Source of the DNA: Bigelowiella natans CCMP2755
Taxonomy: Eukaryota; Protista; Cercozoa
Length of the DNA: 64,000 nucleotides
Assembly (NCBI GenBank): GCA_000320545.1
Contig: ADNK01002094.1
Location: 58,878-122,877, forward strand
Reading direction: 5' to 3'
Each line of letters opens with the position of its first letter. Position 1 is the stretch's first letter. The notes under the pieces are model-generated. The model ran no database searches and was not told where the DNA came from. It worked only from the letters and a program-made list of their open reading frames with translations. Below are positions 5,790 through 42,623 of this stretch, one piece after another. The position numbers and the translations under genes are program-made.

Positions 5790-8700
5790 ATACATTTGTC
5801 TAAAGCAGGCTAGCAGGGCCGGATTCTTCGGCTTTTCCTCGACTTTTTTAGTGAATGTGGAGATCATTCTGGTGGAAAGTTTGCAAGAAAAACCAGCACA
5901 CACGAAATAGCGCTAGAATGGCAACTGAAAGTTCGCTCACTGGAGTGAGCATGCGTATGTTGCTCGCAGCTCGCAGGCAAAGAAGCACACAATGCATTGA
6001 TCACAGCTGCGGATTGTTGCGCACAAAAAATCTAGAACTAGAGAAGTGTGCACGCATGCGACACGATGATCGCATGCAATGTGCACGCATCGCATGTGGA
6101 CTTTGTGTGCATGCCACAACTGTGTCAATCCCGGTAACGAGTGGGTTTTGAACAAACTGTGCTTTGCGCGTGCGGCCTGGCGCGCTCAATCGTTGCAATT
6201 GGACATTGGAAGCACACTGGAGCCTGTTTGAGGTTCAAATTTGATTTTTTTTTTTCGAATTTCAGCTTGAAAACCTCATTTTTCAACGCCTGCCAGCGGG
6301 CGAAAATTGAAAAATTCTTGCCACTTTTGAACACGCTGGCACACTTGCATTTGCGTGCCACAAGATTTGCAAGCTCATGAGGGTGTGTGCACACTAGCTT
6401 CATGGACGTGCGAAGTTTCAGCACACGCACGCAAAAAGCACACACCTGGGCGCGCGTGGGCGCGCAGGTGTGTGCTCAATGACCCTCAATTGTGCCATTC
6501 GTTACACATTTGATGCAGTTGTGGCATGTGCGCGCGCGCGTGCGCAATGTCATGCACAATGACGCAATGCGACACACGTGTCATGCACATGCATCATGTC
6601 ACTGCACGTCTAGCTGTGTCCATTGCAAACACAATGGGCAACAGTCAAGCCTTTGACAATGCCAGAACGCTCGTTTGCATGCATCTTTGATTCAATTGCA
6701 AACACTAGAACACCTCACATGCCGTGATCTAGCATTCAATTTTCACAGCAATCAACTTGTCCAGTGCGCTAGATTGCTAGGTAGCTGAAGTAGCAGTTGT
6801 GCGTCTTCCAATTGCATGCAATGATGAACAATGGATTGGGTTGAGGGTCACAACATTGCTGGATTGTCCACAAGCACAAGCACCAGCAGAAACCTGGCGG
6901 TGACACTTCAGCAGATCTAGCTGGGTGCAGTGCGCAGCCATCAAAACCTCGCTCAAATTGCAGAACCGCGGCCTCGTCTTGGAGTCTTCAGTGTGCTCGC
7001 GACAGTCCTAAGCCAAAGCTAGCTAGCCAGCAAAGCGCGCCATTCTCCAAGTGAGGTGAACTTGGAATTTTTGTCACACGATTTTGCAAATTTGTTCATT
7101 GCATGAGGAATCCACTTTGATCATGTTGGGAGACCACCCTTCTAGTCTTCTAGCCTTGCGGGATTCGTCCTTCCTGTCTGTTCTTGCAAATCGAGGCGTT
7201 TTGGCTCAGCAGTGTCGCATCCCGAAGCTAGGAAAAGCAATGATCCCTGATCATGAGGGTTCACCACTGTCTTCAGCTCATCCATGAGGTCCGGGTGAAA
7301 GTTGTCCAATGTTTGTTTTGGTCACCTCTAGATCTGCTGCGTTTGCCTCGAACCGTTGTGTTTTTGTGGTGAGGCTTTGACTTTCATCGCGTTGTCACCA
7401 CGCTTTGACCCCTTGGGAAGACCAGGGGACTAGCTAGACTAGTGGAGGAGGTGAAATTTTCACGTTGGCCGGGTTCCCAGAGTGGCAAAATCGTTGTCAC
7501 CGTCTTCGTGTTTGTGTGCGATTTAGCCAGTGTCGTCAACAGTGCGAAGATCCCACGCACGCCATGGATGCAATCTTCATCGATGCATCTCTACCGTGTG
7601 TCCATGGCCTCATGCAAAGGGCCATGTAGCGTGCGCACGTGTGAACACACGTAGTTTCTACACCTGTTCTCAAGTTCCATTCCTGTGTCTTTTGTCCACC
7701 ACATGTGTCAAATTGGAGCATTCATGCATGTCATTTGTTGACGTGTCACACGCATCTAGACACATCCCACAACACTGAAGCACGCACACAAAGCACACAT
7801 GAGCTCAGTCACATGTGTCCCAGAGAACAGGTGTTCTGAACCCGGGTACGCTCTGTGGCCTAAAAGGGCTACATGTGCACATGCACGTTGGCAGCGTTTG
7901 GGTGTACGTCTTCCGCCTCTACATGACGCAGTGCCTCCATTGGCACCTTTCTCAAGCCCTGGAACATTCCAGCATCGAAAGGCAACCTGCCTCATGAACC
8001 TCTTCAAGTTGCCAATCACAAAGAATTCGCAGGACAACAGGTTGGAGGGGAGTGCTGCTGCCCGCAGCACGGACATGGTCTGCATGTCTAGATGTGTCCG
8101 CGTCCAAGCACGGGCTAGCAGCCAGCTAGCTACGTTTCCCCGCATCGCACTGCCACATCCTAGACGCCTCCGCCCAATGTCAATGTCTCCTACCAACCCA
8201 AACGCGTACGTTGCCACGTACAGCATGCAGGATGACATTGCGTGCGCTGCATCATGCATGCGCAGCTAGCCTAGAGCCTAAACGTGCGTGCATGTGTCAC
8301 ATGTGCAGAGTCTACATGCATTGTGTGCATGCTGCAGGGCTCGTCTGGGCGTACCCACAAATTTGACATGTGACGCTTCCACACGTGTGCGTACCAAAGT
8401 GAACATGTTGTGAAGCACGGGCACAGTGCGCCCGCCAGAGCCCAAATGTGCACGTGTCGTGCACGGAGTCCACACGCACGCGTCATCATGTGCGTGCATC
8501 GCAGGGCTCTGGGCTAGCATGCGCACTGCCTGATCGACCAATCACAGCGTGACACATGCGGCTGCTAGTGTCTGCAGCTTCGCCTTGCTGCAACCTCCAC
8601 TTGCAGCGGTTTCACGCCTGCATGCTGCACACATGTCATGCCACGTGCGCACACGTGCACACAAATGAAACGCTCTGCGTGCACACCACGCACGGCCCCA

Positions 8701-20200: not shown

Positions 20201-22430
20201 GCTATCAGCAGATCGAATGGATTTGATTGACCTCATCGACTGATAATGACAGTCAGGCAAGTAAATATGCAGTTAAGTATAATTAATCGAAAATCACTAG
20301 TATTAAAGTTATGCCAAGCACATAAAAAGTTCGCAACTGGTGATTACCTCTTGGGGAACTAGACTCCGAGGGACTTTACTATAATGTGAGTTAGTGACAG
20401 AATATCTACATTCAAGAAACATAATGTCAAACAATTTCCATTGCTGCAGTTCCTATTTTTAAGTACGAGGTTGCGGTCCGTAAGTTGAAAGCAGGGATAG
20501 GAAGCTGCGGAGAAGGAGAGTCAAATGGACCTCCGGGTATTACTTCCAATTTATACTGATAAATAGGCACGTCTGATTTAATTTCTAAGGAATTTTTAAA
20601 CTGAATCTACCTTTTCGTCAGCAACAGCGTCCTTTTGAAAGGTGAATCCTCCCTTGTATCTTGGACTCTCACGATATCGTAAAGGACCTTTAACAACTAA
20701 TGTGAATAACACAGCAACATACTGTATACTAGATCTACCTCCCTTGGGCGTCGAAGACACTATGGTCGAGTTCCTGGGTTATGGAGTATTATTTGCTACT
20801 TGAATTTATGTAATTAGTTGAAAATAATTACAACGTAGATGATTCCGGCGAAGAAGGTTCTTCTCTGGGTACATGAACTTTTGATAGGCTTACATTATCA
20901 TCGAAAGGGTTCCTAGCAGCAGCTCGACAAATTATTTTAAATTGGTAATACAAAATGCAATGAAATCTCACTTTGCAGTGATGGCCCTTGCGCGAGGGGA
21001 TAGTTTCTAGAAACAATCACAGACAGTCATTTTATTTTAGCATGGAAGTAACTCTGTTTCGCACCTGTACATCTCGGATTTTGACATTGATAACCTATCA
21101 ATGGGAATTATTTTAGGTCGTTAAATAATCATCAATCGGTAAGATGTACGCAGAGCTTTATTTATAAACAACTTCTTCCAATAATTTAAACCTTATTGTC
21201 ATCCTCGAGCTTGACCTTAACCCAATGAGTACCGTCTTCTCCCAACCAAATTTTCCCGACTCTGCCAATCTAGAATGTGTACTTCAATGAATGCTAAGAT
21301 ATATTCATAATGTTTCATTTACTTTCCCTTTTGCCTGCCCAAGAGCTGGAGTATAACCCAAAACCACACGAGAATTTTCTTTGAGAGTCTTAGCTTTTGT
21401 CTAAATAATCATAATTTGCAGGAAGAGGATCGTTAGTTTTTGGAAACACAATTGGAGGCACTTGGGACTGCTCAAGTTTGCAATTTTTGCAATGTTTGAA
21501 GATACATATTTTGATATCACTTCGTCTAATTCCGCATTATTCTCTGCCATTTTCATCTGTGCCTGAGAATAGAAACATCTATGAGTGCAAGATATCAAAA
21601 TTCGTTTTAAGAAACCATGGTATCCTTAGTCTCTTCAATTCCCATTGTTGCAAGGGATAGAGATGGCAACCTATACACGATGAAATTCAAATGCAGAGGG
21701 GGGAAATTGGTACTATCAAAGATCACGATGCATTCATAAGCTTTTGAGCGAAGCTTTATTTTCTAACTACCTTGCTTCATAATGCAATATTTGGCCCCTT
21801 CCCTTTCGGCTTGCAAATTTGAAAGATTTCATAACAAAAATAGATGGTGAGTCTGTATCGTCCACATTCTTGCTTAAGGCCATCTCAATTTCGCTAATAT
21901 CTGGACTCTTCTCCATAGACCGAGCTTTCGTAGAATTGTCAGAATTTACAGTGACTTGTGTGTTGTCGGTGGCCTGGGTACTTACATCTGTTAATTTCAT
22001 GTTGTCGTTCCCTGCATCTCTTCCCATAGATTTAGTGTTGTACAGCATTGTTCCACTGGTTGCCACTAACGAAAGCGTATCATTTAAAAGATTAGTTAAT
22101 AAGTGTTACTGCTAAAAAAGATTGGGAGTCTGAATCCTGATTGGCTAAGACTTCCCTTCCAATACTGTGATCTATTTTCCCTTTACATTTACGTCTCAGT
22201 TCAACGTGCATTGAGACATAGAGATGGTCGGACGACATTTTTCTGATGTCACCTAATTTCTCATCGTAATTGAGACGCTCAAGCGAAGCAGATGATAAGT
22301 CCGGTAGTTGTTCATTCGAAGCAGTCATTACGGCTTTGTCGTCGTTGATGGAGTCAATAGTTTGAATAGTTTGTGCATGCCAGTTTTGTCTGACTACAGC
22401 ATTTTTTGGTTTAAAATGTGATGGTATCAA
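15640..22430 (-). CDS. Large hypothetical protein (or two genes) with many short introns: EF-hand-like motif, coiled coil, C-terminal SH3/Tudor-like segment
   Basis: Open exons at 22092-22430, 21767-22066 and 19547-19903. RLFDNLDQN|.DGFVFYHEF near 20000-20140 is EF-hand-like. E/K/R-rich exons at 18880-19520. The end reads LPLRFKLGSKVNVYVPETKSWME|GMIIAIWEQGSPYRVRI. The start is uncertain. Confidence 0.6.
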
Positions 22431-23468
22431 GGGTTATGGATTACATTTTCTTGCGGTGAGATTTACTCGGTCGCTATTTTAAGAGAATGCCAGTTGCGTT
22501 GTAGATGCAAATTTAGAGTGGCGACGTGGTGACATGGTGACATTGCTACTACATGTAGTGCTACCCTTGGAAATGTAAAAACGGGCATTGTGCAGCAACT
22601 GTGGTGGAGTCAGTCTGTGTACAGCAACATTAATGGTTTTTTCGCCTATCTGGCCGAGGCAAAGGGCACATGCGTCGCATGTAGTGTAGTGGCAGACTGC
22701 TAATCTGCTAATTTGCTGCAGGGTGCAGTACTAGTTCAACATAACTTCTTAACGAGAGAGAGAGGACAACTGAAAACTAATGATAAGTGTATCATGTTAC
22801 GTTGTCGCACAACAAAAACTCTATGTGTTATCACTATGATCTTCATTCGATATCCGATACCAAAATCTAATGTGAAGGACGTGTGCGACAACACTACCTA
22901 AAAAATAACGATCATCTTCTTGTTACACTACAGCAAAATATCTGGCGTCAGGTCACCATTCTTACAATGTTTTCCCAATTGTTGCTCCTCAATTTTCTGA
23001 CACCGTCATTGTTTCCATTATTATTGTTATCAATTATTCATTTTGTTTTAAAATCGACCAAGAAATATTGGATATCATGATCCAATCTGAGTATAATTGT
23101 AGTATCAAATATCTCCCAGAGGCAAGAAGAAGAAGACGAAGAAGAAGGAACACAAATCAAAAGGAGGAGGATGAGGAATGCCGTTACAAGTGTAGTATCG
23201 ATAGTGGTAAGTTAAACATGATTTTTGGAGGAGGGGCTCATTGTCATCCTCCCTTTCCCCCTCCTGTCCCATCAGCACGATGTCAAATAGAAGTACTCAT
23301 ATTTGGTACTCGTAGAGTGGAATGGGTTCCTATTAACTGTTTCGGACTCTTCGTAATGAGTTTTAGCTGCTCCGAAAATAATTAACGAGTTCTAGAGTGG
23401 GCAACATGATTTCACAAATCCTACTTCAAATCTCAGGGAAAGATATAGAAGTTGGCTTCCGGAGCAGC

Positions 23469-27413: not shown

Positions 27414-29720
27414 TGTTTGTGTGTGTGTGTGTGTGTGTGTACATTGACCGTGCAGCGTGTGGCCAACCTGCCCGACCACCCGTCCACAAATGATGCACCA
27501 ACTCCGTCAAACCTGTAACGAATCGTGAGAGTGAGCATTTCGAAGCTTTTGCGCGCGACCAAGCGCGCAGCACGAACAATGTCTCCTGGACTTTCTGGCA
27601 CAACACCTACTGTTAGCGTTTCTCGCAACCACATTGCGCTAGAATGGATGCCACGCACACACGCGCTGCGAATGTTAGCCGCAGCACTGGTTTTCGATCC
27701 AATGCGTCAAATTGATCACAACTCCGACAAATGTGCAAAACTGCGTGGTGATGTGACATGCGAGCCAATGTTTAGTAGCAATGTGCCTAAATGACTAACA
27801 ATCACACTGCGACATGGCCTAGCTAGCTAGCTAGCTAGCGCTTGTCGTCCTGTCATTGGTGGCTGCAAGCAGTGGCCGCTGCATTGCACATGCAGCTACA
27901 TGCATGAGGATGACCATGGCATGTTCAACGCAATTTGCAATCAATTGATCAACAACATCCGTCTTGCATGTGCGTCCAGACTTTGAGCTAGCTAGCTAGC
28001 TAGTTAGCTAGAGACGTGCTGCAGATGCCATTAGCACATGGTTGCATTCAATGCATGACGATGATGATGCAAGGCAGAATGAAACCTGGATGGCTCAGCT
28101 TCCACATCTGTGTGCAGTTTCATTGCGCAGCACTTGCAACACAATCGTGACAATGTGGGCCATTGCAGATTCATGTCCACAAAACTGATGCCCTGTCAAA
28201 GAAATGACATTTGCCGAGCATGCACGAGCAAACAAGCGAAGGAAAAGGCTCACACCGCTTGCATGCTTGCGGGTCGTTCCACATCGAGGCCAAACCCGGT
28301 CACAAATGGGTTTCGCATGTTTGCAGAGCGCTTCAAGGGCATTTTTTGCGTGCAATCCGTCCGCAACCGTCGAAAACACTTTCTGAGTCGGCGGAATGTC
28401 GAAAAAATGAAAAAATTCAAAATCTCAGCTCAAAAACCTCGATTTTTTGACCCCTCACAACGTGCATTGCGGAGAAAATTCTCATGATTTTGGTCAGAGA
28501 TGCAGCCGACGCACGTGTGCAATGCGAGCAAGTGAGGACATGTCCGTTTGCAATGGAACTAGCTTTGCAGACAGCCGGAAGCGCAATGCTCAAATGTCAA
28601 AATTGATCGAGATGTGACGCGTTGAAATTTTGAAATTGGGGCATCACTGCTACATCTAGACATGCATGCAACCACAGGATGCACATGACGTGTCATGAGT
28701 GCAGAGGGGTTTTGACGCATTGGAGACACTGCGCAGCTGGTTTTCGGTCAAAGAAATTGGTCGTGTGCAAACGCGCGCGCAGAATTTTGGTTCAAAACGC
28801 CGAGGTGTGGTGCGCACAAGCGGCGCGTGGTGCGGGGCAGCGCGATCGAGCAGAAGTCGCACCTCGGGGGGGCCAGGGGGGGGGGGGGAATGCGAATGAA
28901 AAAAATTCAACCGTGCCAAAAGTTTCCAAAGGACCCCTGCTTGACATCTAAATCGAGTTTGCGCGAAAAAAATGGGTCAATTTTTTTTTTTTTCAATTTT
29001 CGCAAAGTTGTGACCGGTTTGCTAGTTTGGCCTCGATGTGTCAGAGCATGGCAAACTAGCCATTTGCGCGCCAACACACATCGGCCATGCGCTGGGCACA
29101 CAGCATCCCAGCTAGCCAGCAACATCCCACTGCGCAGTCACAGTCTAGCAGTGGCACAAAATTCGGGAAAAATGCCCGACATTTTCCCCTGACAATTGCG
29201 ACAATCTAGCACTACTAGCTTGAAGCTAGACTGCATAGCCCGACTGCATGTCGCGGAACGATCACCGAGGCAATCTAGCAATGCTCCTGGACCAGTGGAA
29301 GTTGCAACTAAGCGTTGCAACCTCGCATGCTCTAGATGCTAGCATGCCCCCTGCTAGCCTGCCATCATCATGTCATTGAGCATGCAAGTTGCATGCAAGC
29401 CTCCATGTCTAGATGTGACTTACCAAACTGTAGACAAGTGTAGTAGATGTGACCTAACCCTAAGCAACCATGCTAGCATGCCTGCATGAAAACACGAGAA
29501 ACAATCTAGCAATGAAGCACAACATGCACACCCATGAGCGCGCATGCTAGCATGCGCATGCGCGTTCGCACCTGCATGTGCTCATAGTGGTCGCACACAA
29601 ACTGACTAGCTGACCACGCATCGCTTCTGCGCTGCCTCACGAATTGACGCGCATGCGATGCCAAAGAGTTACGCGTCACAATTATCAACAAAAGCTATAG
29701 CTGGGCGCCCGTGCTATAGC
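27290..29720. repeat. Island 3: TpA-depleted transposon debris between convergent genes
   Basis: Contains MITE B, (CTAG)5 at 27819, and at least 12 NNNN-CTAG-NNNN motifs. Confidence 0.85.
28280..29040. mobile_element. MITE family B (CAC...GTG ends, 2-bp TSD tc; CMC/EnSpm-like, non-autonomous)
   Basis: TIRs cacatcgaggccaaacccggtcacaa / ttgtgaccggtttg[ctagtttg]gcctcgatgtg. tc flanks both ends. The second copy is inverted at 41431-42623. Confidence 0.9.
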
Positions 29721-29976
29721 TGCTGCAGCATCCGCAACAATAGACCTTCATGTTTGCGTGAGAATGCTGGGATCAAGATCAGATATGAGCAAAAACACTG
29801 TATATAATGATGCTATGGCATCAACGAAATAGTCTTATTCATCATGCCAAAGTCAATTATTGCTTTACAGCAGGAAATCATATCCACTTTCACAGTTTTG
29901 GCCGGTGCACGAACCACGTAATGTTGCTAATCTTCGAAGTTTGATATATACATATGATACCGAGAAGTAATCTCGA

Positions 29977-41430: not shown

Positions 41431-42623
41431 CACATCCAGGCCAAACCGGTCACAACTTTGCGAAAATTGGAAAAAAAAAGAATTGACGCATTTTTTTCGC
41501 GCAAACTCGATTTAGATGTCAAACAGGCTAGCAGGGGTCCTTTGGAAACTTTTGTCACAGTTGAGTTTTTTCCATTCGCATTCCCCCCCCCTAGCCCCCC
41601 CCTAGCCCCCCCGAGGTGCGACTTCTGCTCGATCGCGCCGCCCCGCACCACGCGCCGCTTGTGCGCACCACACCTCGGCGTTTTAAACCAAAATTCTGCG
41701 CGCGCTTTTGCACAAGAATGATCTCTTTGACCGAAAACCAGCTGCGCGGTGTCTCCAATGCGTCAAAACCCCTCTGCACTCATGACACGTCATGTGTGTC
41801 CTGTGGTTGCATGCATGTGGCAGTGATGCCCCAATTTCAAAATTTCAACGCGTCACATCTCGATCAATTTTGACATTTGAGCATCGCGCTTCCGGCTGTC
41901 TGCAAAGCTAGTTCCATTGCAAACGGACATGTCCTCACTTGCTCGCATTGCACACGTGCATCGGCTGCATCTCTGACCAAAATCATGAGAATTTTCTCCG
42001 CAATGCACGTTGTGAGGGGTCAAAAAATCGAAGTTTTTGAGCTGAGATTTTGAATTTTTTCACTTTTTCGACATTCCGCCGACGCAGAAAGTGTTTTTTG
42101 ACGGTTGCGGACGGATTGCACGCAAAAAATGCCCTTGAAGCGCTCTGCAAACATGCGAAACCCATTTGTGACCGGGTTCACAACTGTGTCAAGTGTGTGA
42201 CGAATGGTGTGAATTTTCAATTGAGGGTCATTGAGCACACACCTGCGCGCCCACGCGCGCCCAGGTGCATGCTTTTTGCGTGCGTGTGTGCTGAAACTTC
42301 GCACGTCCACAAAGCCAGCTAGCCAGTGTGCACACACCCTCATGAGCTTGCAAAACTTGTGGCACGCTCATGCAAACAATGCGCTAGCGTGTTCAAAAGT
42401 GGCAAGAATTTTTCAATTTTCGCCTGCTGGCAGGCGTTGAAAAATGAAGTTTTCAAGCTGAAATTCGAAAAAAAAAAATCAAATTTGAACCTCAAACAGG
42501 CTCCAGTGTGCTTCCAATGTTCAATTGCAACGATTGAGCGCGCCAGGCCGCACGCGCAAAGCACAGTTTGTTCAAAACCCACTCGTTGCCGGGATTGATG
42601 CAGTTGTGTTTGGCCTCGATGTG
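41431..42623. mobile_element. MITE family B copy (inverted relative to 28280-29040) carrying a nested MITE A; TSD aa
   Basis: Ends are cacatccaggccaaaccggtcacaa and tttggcctcgatgtg, with aa on both flanks. 41431-42178 aligns to the reverse complement of 28290-29040. Confidence 0.9.
42179..42608. mobile_element. MITE family A copy inserted in the TIR of MITE B; TSD tt
   Basis: TIRs cacaactgtgtcaa / ttgatgcagttgtg. The empty site ggccaaacccgg is visible at 28288-28299. Confidence 0.9.

Follow-up and report, generated by a model that had tools for sequence, protein, structure and literature searches.

Two MITE (miniature inverted-repeat transposable element) families, here called A and B, are each present twice in a 64,000-nucleotide stretch of the Bigelowiella natans CCMP2755 genome (GenBank assembly GCA_000320545.1, contig ADNK01002094.1, positions 58,878 to 122,877 of the forward strand). 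The copies of each family differ from one another by 8-bp segments in which the palindrome CTAG stands between two identical tetranucleotides. Were these segments gained or lost, did they arise once or repeatedly, and what kind of process leaves such a mark? We find that the CTAG motifs distinguishing one MITE copy from another are true 8-bp insertions made after the MITEs landed, and that they are the product of one stereotyped, recurrent process. The whole 64,000-nucleotide stretch is referred to below as the window, and CTAG with an identical 4-bp direct repeat on either side (X4-CTAG-X4, chance probability ~1/256) as a perfect scar. The window is intron-rich eukaryotic DNA from an assembly of 91.4 Mb in 3736 contigs. 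The sequence read consists of 253 kb from contigs C778 and C1643, window included, or ~360 kb once other loci are added. No description of the CTAG mark was found in the literature.

Both carriers have the usual features of MITEs. They are short and non-coding, carry inverted repeats at their termini (TIRs) and duplications of the target site (TSDs), and occur in many dispersed copies. MITE B is 761 bp long with the TIR CACATCGAGGCCAAAC and CAC..GTG termini, and most copies have 2-bp TSDs; 16 matches were identified in the genome, of which 10 were aligned. MITE A is 409 bp long with the TIR CACAACTG and has at least 40 genomic copies. As both families combine CAC..GTG termini with 2-bp TSDs of variable sequence, the sequences suggest a single CACTA/Mirage-like superfamily. 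The CACTA transposase domain (Transposase_21) has no match in the genome, but the control genomes gave no match either, so its absence is not shown. A scan of metagenomic data with a MITE A 20-mer returned one unrelated contig without scars. The two MITE B copies of the window are 96% identical, and five scars differ between them.

A preliminary description of the window had listed three MITE B sites that are filled in one copy and empty in the other, and had noted that the MITE A site at 42315 is 8 bp longer than its homologue near 6393. All of the quoted strings are present where it placed them, and comparison of the MITE A copies gives the same difference in length. In the filled alleles both copies of the target are kept around the extra bases, and the empty alleles contain a single copy. 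The alignment of 10 genomic MITE B copies (with a maximum-likelihood tree on 681 gap-free columns) and a genome pattern search that recovered 23 copies of the MITE A site show the state of the rest of each family. The family consensus, proposed in the preliminary description as the deciding comparison, lacks CTAG and the duplication at all four positions, and the motifs are therefore insertions made after transposition. ACAT-CTAG-ACAT and TTTG-CTAG-TTTG each occur in one of the 10 MITE B copies, namely copy 1 of the window, while the consensus has a single ACAT and a single TTTG. The MITE A insertion is found only in copy 2 of the window (1/23). The TTTG event establishes the polarity of the change, as had been argued, since neither the left TIR of copy 1 nor any of the nine other copies has it.

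The filled state could instead be ancestral, the empty alleles having arisen by precise 8-bp deletions between the repeats, or the differences could reflect gene conversion, slippage or assembly error. At one site this would be as economical: MITE B copy 1 lacks the CCTG event borne by its sister, copy 2, and by L010, and one precise loss is as parsimonious there as two gains. However, filled states occur as single cases among 10 and 23 copies, the empty state is seen in the left TIR of MITE B copy 1 itself, and the duplicates bear copy-specific substitutions. Additionally, the decay of cores to CCAG and CTGG, the nesting of events and their regional bias are not expected of artefacts. For ACAT, TTTG and the MITE A insertion, an ancestral filled state is refuted by the family consensus, and as a general account we find it scarcely credible.

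The same MITE positions have been hit independently in different copies. At the ACAT position, copies without an event have a single tetranucleotide (ACAT or a variant), L007 carries its own ACAG-CTAG-ACAG, and L008 carries a decayed ACGT-TCAG-ACGT. CCTG-CTAG-CCTG is a minority state found in three of the 10 copies (L002, which is copy 2 of the window, L003 and L010), while L006 shows a 9-bp variant, CTCTG-CTAG-CTCTG, with a T private to that copy in each of the two repeats. The tree supports the grouping (L010,(L001,L002)), where L001 is copy 1 of the window, at 100/99 and 98/95, and the CCTG event needs at least two origins on this tree. A further site, GACACTG|CGCA, carries ACTG-CTAG-ACTG in L003 and L004 and, shifted by one base, CAAT-CTAG-CAAT in L006. 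The copy-specific substitutions within the duplicated tetramers (ACAT in L001, ACAG in L007, CTCTG in L006) support the earlier view that the events were independent and followed transposition. The accompanying claim that both B copies carry private events stands for ACAT and TTTG in copy 1 and for the second G-tract scar in copy 2, but not for CCTG, which is also present in L003, in L010 and as the 9-bp variant of L006.

The first of the two G-tract scars is probably common to both MITE B copies of the window because the two sister copies have an identical 7-G left flank; in copy 1 its core would have decayed to CCAG (28873-28876). Two other kinds of small insertion occur in the aligned MITE B copies. 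An 8-bp insertion in L005, TTTG-CACA-TTTG, has a 4-bp duplication and an unrelated core, for which TpA decay of CTAG is a poor fit. Palindromic tetramers are inserted without a duplication in L003 (GATC and CATG) and in L010 (CTAG); these may be due to chance or represent a minor product of a related kind.

The anatomy of the process is apparent from counts over larger regions. A perfect 4-bp flanking repeat is found at 44 of the 220 CTAG sites in the window, and other palindromic tetramers give 0-7 cases. Over the 253 kb the figure is 109 of 710 CTAG sites, 39 times the chance expectation. Microsatellites aside, CTAG is the only core of 0-7 nt with an enrichment in the 253 kb; cores with one mismatch show none. 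The flanking repeat is 4 bp long in 147 events and 5 bp in ~12 genuine ones (~8%). The logo of the reconstructed empty sites is dyad-symmetric, with C at -1, C or A at X1 (G 5%), A at X2, A or T at X3, G or T at X4 (C 9%) and G at +1 (51%). The target is thus weakly palindromic, C|[C/A]A[T/A][G/T]|G, with flexible CA/TG steps. The commonest targets are CATG, ACAT/ATGT and CAAT/ATTG, and TpA is missing from most. Flanks that match at three of four positions exceed chance in the window by only ~8, compared with 44 perfect repeats, and most scars are therefore younger than the divergence among MITE copies. We estimate ~39,000 scars genome-wide, which would take roughly 2e-4 events per genome per generation, a plausible rate.

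The precision of the process is seen in the indel spectrum between paralogous repeat copies, which has a sharp peak at 8 bp (58 unique events, compared with 11-12 for 6-7 bp). Only indels of 1 and 2 bp are commoner, and those of 4 bp are level with it. CTAG is contained in 33 of the 58, and several of the others have the X4-core-X4 build with CCAG, CTGG, CAAG or TTGG as the core; from their sequence these look like scars in which the TpA has mutated. Scars also appear to have been hit again. Of the seven (CTAG)3 arrays, four have a 4-bp repeat on either side, giving X4-(CTAG)3-X4, which is what a second event targeting the CTAG core would produce, and the (CTAG)5/(CTAG)4 pair at 27819..28007 may reflect re-insertion into CTAG cores, slippage or both. 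In the few examples available, (CTAG)n arrays tend to pair 170-260 bp apart, a nucleosome-like spacing (window 27819/27988; C778 17984/18190, loci L017-L018; C1643 23883/24140/24370, locus L032).

The scars are clustered in islands of at most 1 kb, and outside the MITEs the island DNA is unique, non-repeat sequence. The long open reading frames (ORFs) that flank the islands at 5.8-8.1 kb and 27.3-29.6 kb are oriented towards them, and these islands are therefore zones between convergent gene ends. One of the neighbours is a minus-strand pyruvate carboxylase gene whose exon blocks align at 99.2-100% identity to a transcript contig of the Joint Genome Institute (L046). Another strain is the probable source of this transcript, since the aligned blocks differ from the window by 0-0.8%. 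It ends at the poly(A) site at window position 29786 (minus strand), short of the island at 29100-29615, which begins ~170 bp further on. Within this island a nested 9-bp event lies at ~29331 inside an older CATG scar. The coordinates of the window features are collected in Table 1.

Table 1. Window coordinates of the MITE copies, empty and filled sites, and neighbouring scars
Feature	Position	Strand	Remarks
MITE A copy 1	6115..6523	+	homologous site in short form; CTAG in place of the CTGG seen in 12 other copies
Pair of (CTAG)5 and (CTAG)4 arrays	27819..28007		27819-27838 and 27988-28003; 169 bp apart
MITE B copy 1 (L001)	28280..29040	+	TIR CACATCGAGGCCAAAC; 2-bp TSD 'tc' at 28278-28279 and 29041-29042
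Filled ACAT-CTAG-ACAT	28652..28663		MITE B copy 1; private among 10 aligned copies
Decayed scar GGGG-CCAG-GGGG	28869..28880		MITE B copy 1; homologue in copy 2 is its first GGGG-CTAG-GGGG; T>C at TpA
Empty CCTG, single	28936..28939		MITE B copy 1; homologous site filled in copy 2
Filled TTTG-CTAG-TTTG	29018..29029		right TIR of MITE B copy 1; breaks TIR symmetry; private
Island next to MITE B copy 1	29100..29615		unique non-repeat DNA; 9 further perfect scars and the nested 9-bp event
Perfect scars in this island	29108, 29141, 29271, 29350, 29405, 29469, 29502, 29543, 29602		
MITE B copy 2 (L002), main part	41431..42176	-	first 15 nt at 42609-42623, split off by MITE A copy 2
Empty TTTG, single	41442..41445		right TIR of MITE B copy 2
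Filled CCTG-CTAG-CCTG	41524..41535		MITE B copy 2; + strand reads CAGGctagCAGG; recurrent hot spot
Two G-tract scars GGGG-CTAG-GGGG	41587..41609	minus-strand reading	MITE B copy 2; second private to copy 2
Empty ACAT, single	41815..41818		MITE B copy 2
MITE A copy 2	42179..42608	-	TIR CACAACTG; sits in left TIR of MITE B copy 2; 2-bp TSD AA, junctions 42177-42178 and 42609-42610
Filled CTGG-CTAG-CTGG	42315..42326		MITE A copy 2; + strand reads CCAGctagCCAG; 8 bp longer than copy 1 near 6393

A position just past poly(A) sites between convergent genes is one of the features that would suit mis-repair of breaks made by topoisomerase II (TOP2), which have a 4-bp 5' stagger; filling in both ends would yield a duplication. 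The 4-bp length of the repeat, the dyad symmetry of the site and the C preceding the cut on both strands also fit, and trapped TOP2 gives rise to 2-4-bp de novo duplications. However, such repair predicts a plain tandem duplication, and plain X4X4 is not enriched: it accounts for four of the 58 four-bp indels, and a core length of 0 is at background. Filling in is also unable to yield a constant CTAG. We therefore consider this origin very improbable and close to refuted.

The constant palindromic core, the duplication of fixed length and variable sequence, the dyad-symmetric target with CA/TG steps and the hot spots argue for a dimeric transposase or integrase of the DDE type, and we infer that the agent is an enzyme of this kind. 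The core is independent of the flanks and must therefore derive from a donor. Our hypothesis, to which we give a probability of about one half, is that a cut-and-paste element that has CTAG ends and duplicates 4 bp of its target left the scars as footprints. The enzyme would open a weakly palindromic target with a 4-bp, sometimes 5-bp, stagger, and the element would insert with duplication of the target and later be excised. If the 5' strands were cut 4 nt (or 2 nt) inside ends reading CTAG...CTAG, both donor flanks would keep the same self-complementary CTAG overhang, which would anneal and be ligated, leaving the palindrome between two copies of the staggered bases. Such a common overhang would account for the invariable CTAG core and for the uniformity of the scars. 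In mariner and Stowaway footprints the target duplication likewise flanks nucleotides from the element ends, as a result of a staggered cut inside the element (PMC4561436). The chemistry proposed here would combine excision like that of Tc1/mariner and Stowaway elements with a non-TA 4-bp target. Scars would build up where 8 bp are tolerated or where the enzyme is directed, that is, in untranscribed, TpA-purged DNA behind genes.

Other sources of the scars were rejected on their structure. In a hAT footprint 8 bp would be duplicated, with palindromic changes that stem from the flanks, whereas the scars are built as 4+4+4 with a constant core independent of the flanks. An origin from P nucleotides (hairpins) would make the core depend on the flanks. 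For 5'-truncated retroelement copies, no longer forms with the same end were found.

Several observations weigh against excision of an element. In the ~360 kb, which hold ~160 scars, we identified no element with inverted ends of the form X4-CTAG...CTAG-X4 or X4-CT...AG-X4, and none that supplies the extra bases with the same duplication length. Searches of this sequence at any spacing, and generic searches for TIRs with a 4- or 5-bp duplication, gave microsatellite noise only, and the k-mers following CTAG reveal no recurrent element end. No superfamily is known to us in which a 4-bp duplication of non-specific sequence goes with CTAG or CT..AG ends. Excision usually leaves a heterogeneous set of footprints, yet the scars are uniform, without partial or longer forms. 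The Tc1-type domain DDE_3 (PF13358) has no match in the genome, though control genomes gave matches. Mariner (PF01359) and piggyBac (DDE_Tnp_1_7, PF13843) also gave none, but the controls were without a match too, so that absence is not proven for either; MULE and CACTA domains were likewise without a match, with the same limit for CACTA, for which the controls were silent. Finally, none of the 21 de novo indels recorded in B. natans mutation-accumulation lines is of the CTAG type, and CTAG insertions are not mentioned in that study (Mettrop et al., bioRxiv 10.64898/2026.01.13.699255). This is weak evidence. From ~39,000 scars and the neutral decay time, only ~0.7 new scar is expected in the 3132 generations of the preprint, and zero among 21 indels is therefore no test of the process. 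Seventeen of the 21 indels are intergenic (Tables S1/S2 of the same preprint). Among the preprint's insertions, many have ACA at the end or the sequence CATA or TGTG, and look like microsatellite slippage of the CA, CATA or CAA type.

The genome does encode candidate enzymes. Harbinger-type DDE_Tnp_4, with 15 matches, several of them intact and with open frames of up to 527 aa, is the only multi-copy cut-and-paste transposase family detected. Pogo-like DDE_1 (PF03184) is represented by two intact frames and hAT by three matches. The Harbinger-like genes, among them those at C777:78413-78880, C2929:18710-19162 and 22159-22575, and C1777:15197-15649, and the pogo-like genes at C2661:202080-202535 and C2845:6046-6501 are the leading candidates. 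The rve integrase domain has 38 matches, which include many near-identical 1489-aa pol frames and multi-copy integrase genes of 360-380 aa, and which stem from an active long terminal repeat (LTR) retrotransposon and from viral-type elements.

The integrase genes of 360-380 aa (L038-L041 and L045, on C1612, C175, C631, C1475 and C200) are 95-97% identical, lie in AT-rich DNA without scars and have a common boundary ~40 bp beyond the stop codon. B. natans is known to carry virophage-like insertions, to which these genes probably belong. The 360-aa genes were rejected as the donor: they end in GGAGAGTCTCC..., not in CTAG, and resemble pieces of larger viral-type elements. Another candidate, a 905-bp insertion in a MITE B copy on C778 (L008:596-1500), has a 4-bp TSD, TCAC, but no TIR, CTAG ends or internal CTAG.

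The number of rve genes raises the question of whether abortive or reversed integration by such an enzyme, from the active LTR retrotransposon or the viral-like elements, could leave a 4- or 5-bp duplication and a few end nucleotides behind. Integrases make 4-6-bp duplications and prefer weakly palindromic targets with flexible pyrimidine-purine steps (compare PMC4422553 and PMC4477651). The scar targets share these properties. Nevertheless, LTR-type ends are typically TG..CA rather than CT..AG. We know of no excision pathway for elements with rve integrases, and the usual residue of LTR elements is a solo LTR and not a 4-bp remnant. On balance, we regard this origin as improbable.

The distribution of the scars is tied to the composition of the surrounding DNA. 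In 1-kb windows of the 253 kb with CTAG masked, scar density is 2.3-2.75/kb where rho(TpA) is below 0.4 and 0.25-0.29/kb elsewhere, a regional bias of ~10-fold. The low-TpA windows contain preferred target tetramers at only 1.3 times the frequency found elsewhere, yet these are hit 5.6 times more often there. The MITE B consensus itself contains only ~6 TpA in 680 bp. Hypermutation of foreign DNA specifically at TpA has been described in B. natans, with TpA-poor clusters rich in CpA and TpG as its signature (Mettrop et al., 10.64898/2026.01.13.699255), and the low-TpA windows show this signature. As the cores of scars decay to CCAG or CTGG, the purge appears to act on the TpA of the scars as well. 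At the single-target MITE A position, the 22 short copies read CTGG in 12 cases and CTAG in 10; copy 1 of the window has CTAG, and the target duplicated in copy 2 is CTGG. This split is a TpA/TpG polymorphism within the repeat family and fits one-directional loss of TpA. The idea that CTAG is a protected form of TpA is ruled out by the CCAG and CTGG cores and by this 10:12 split.

This bias bears on an explanation that needs no mobile element, in which a nuclease of the host, or a domesticated one resembling a transposase, cuts silenced or foreign-type chromatin with a 4-bp stagger and repair leaves CTAG in a single step. The tenfold density in low-TpA DNA with the signature of hypermutation, for which target richness accounts only 1.3-fold, would follow from such targeting, and the extreme uniformity of the product, the lack of a donor in ~360 kb and the presence of Harbinger-type genes, a family that is often domesticated, are all in keeping with it. 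However, the source of CTAG is left without explanation, and we know of no enzyme that adds a fixed tetranucleotide at a break. Scars are also present in windows of normal TpA content and in unique spacer DNA beyond the repeats, and young copies of LTR retrotransposons and integrase-bearing elements are without them. We consider one-step tagging unlikely. It could form a second arm of the defence that purges TpA, and a more specific proposal, somewhat less likely again, is that a directed system, whose enzyme may be a domesticated Harbinger/IS5-type transposase, tags DNA of silenced or foreign type behind genes with a 4-bp stagger at CWWG-like sites and a CTAG seal, as an insertion-based arm beside the TpA hypermutator. 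Every hit would then bring a +8 frameshift and a TAG stop on both strands.

If the scars are instead footprints of an excised element, ~40,000 uniform scars would be a rare natural record of past visits by a cut-and-paste element, and would point to an unclassified type of transposon with CTAG ends and a non-TA duplication of 4 or 5 bp. What is new here is the MITE-based proof of polarity, independence, recurrence and relative age, together with the quantitative link to the TpA purge. The MITE pairs supply polarity, independence, hot-spot recurrence and relative dating, which genome-wide counts are unable to provide. The enrichment of scars in TpA-purged DNA ties the mark to the hypermutation of foreign DNA, and a joint mechanism is testable. 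As scars are abundant, polarised and nearly free of homoplasy at the sequence level, they should also be useful as strain markers.

Among known systems, the footprints of Tc1/mariner and Stowaway elements are similar in that both copies of the duplication are kept around a few nucleotides of the element end (PMC4561436). However, those elements duplicate TA and leave varied footprints, while the process described here duplicates a CWWG-like 4-mer or 5-mer (CATG, ACAT, CAAT, CCTG, GGGG and others) around a constant CTAG core. PIF/Harbinger and piggyBac elements cut within the duplication and leave nothing behind; eukaryotic PIF/Harbinger elements make 3-bp TWA duplications and are excised precisely by staggered cleavage of the duplication, without a scar (PMC4561436). 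Here, by contrast, 4 or 5 bp are duplicated, most targets lack TpA, and the site keeps a scar. The piggyBac donor site is resealed through a 4-nt palindromic sticky end, as proposed for CTAG, but there the four bases are those of the target and no DNA is added, whereas CTAG is extra DNA between target copies; a TTAA core is not enriched in our data. IS5, whose family comprises bacterial relatives of PIF/Harbinger elements, makes 4-bp duplications at CTAG-like (YTAR) targets, which resemble the CWWG-like target of the scars. TOP2-dependent duplications share the 4-bp stagger, the dyad-symmetric site and the location at points of torsional stress, but no constant tetranucleotide is added. The TpA hypermutation of Mettrop et al. 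is a process of base substitution and not of insertion; however, it marks the same TpA-poor islands rich in CpA and TpG, and appears to strike the TpA of the scars as well.

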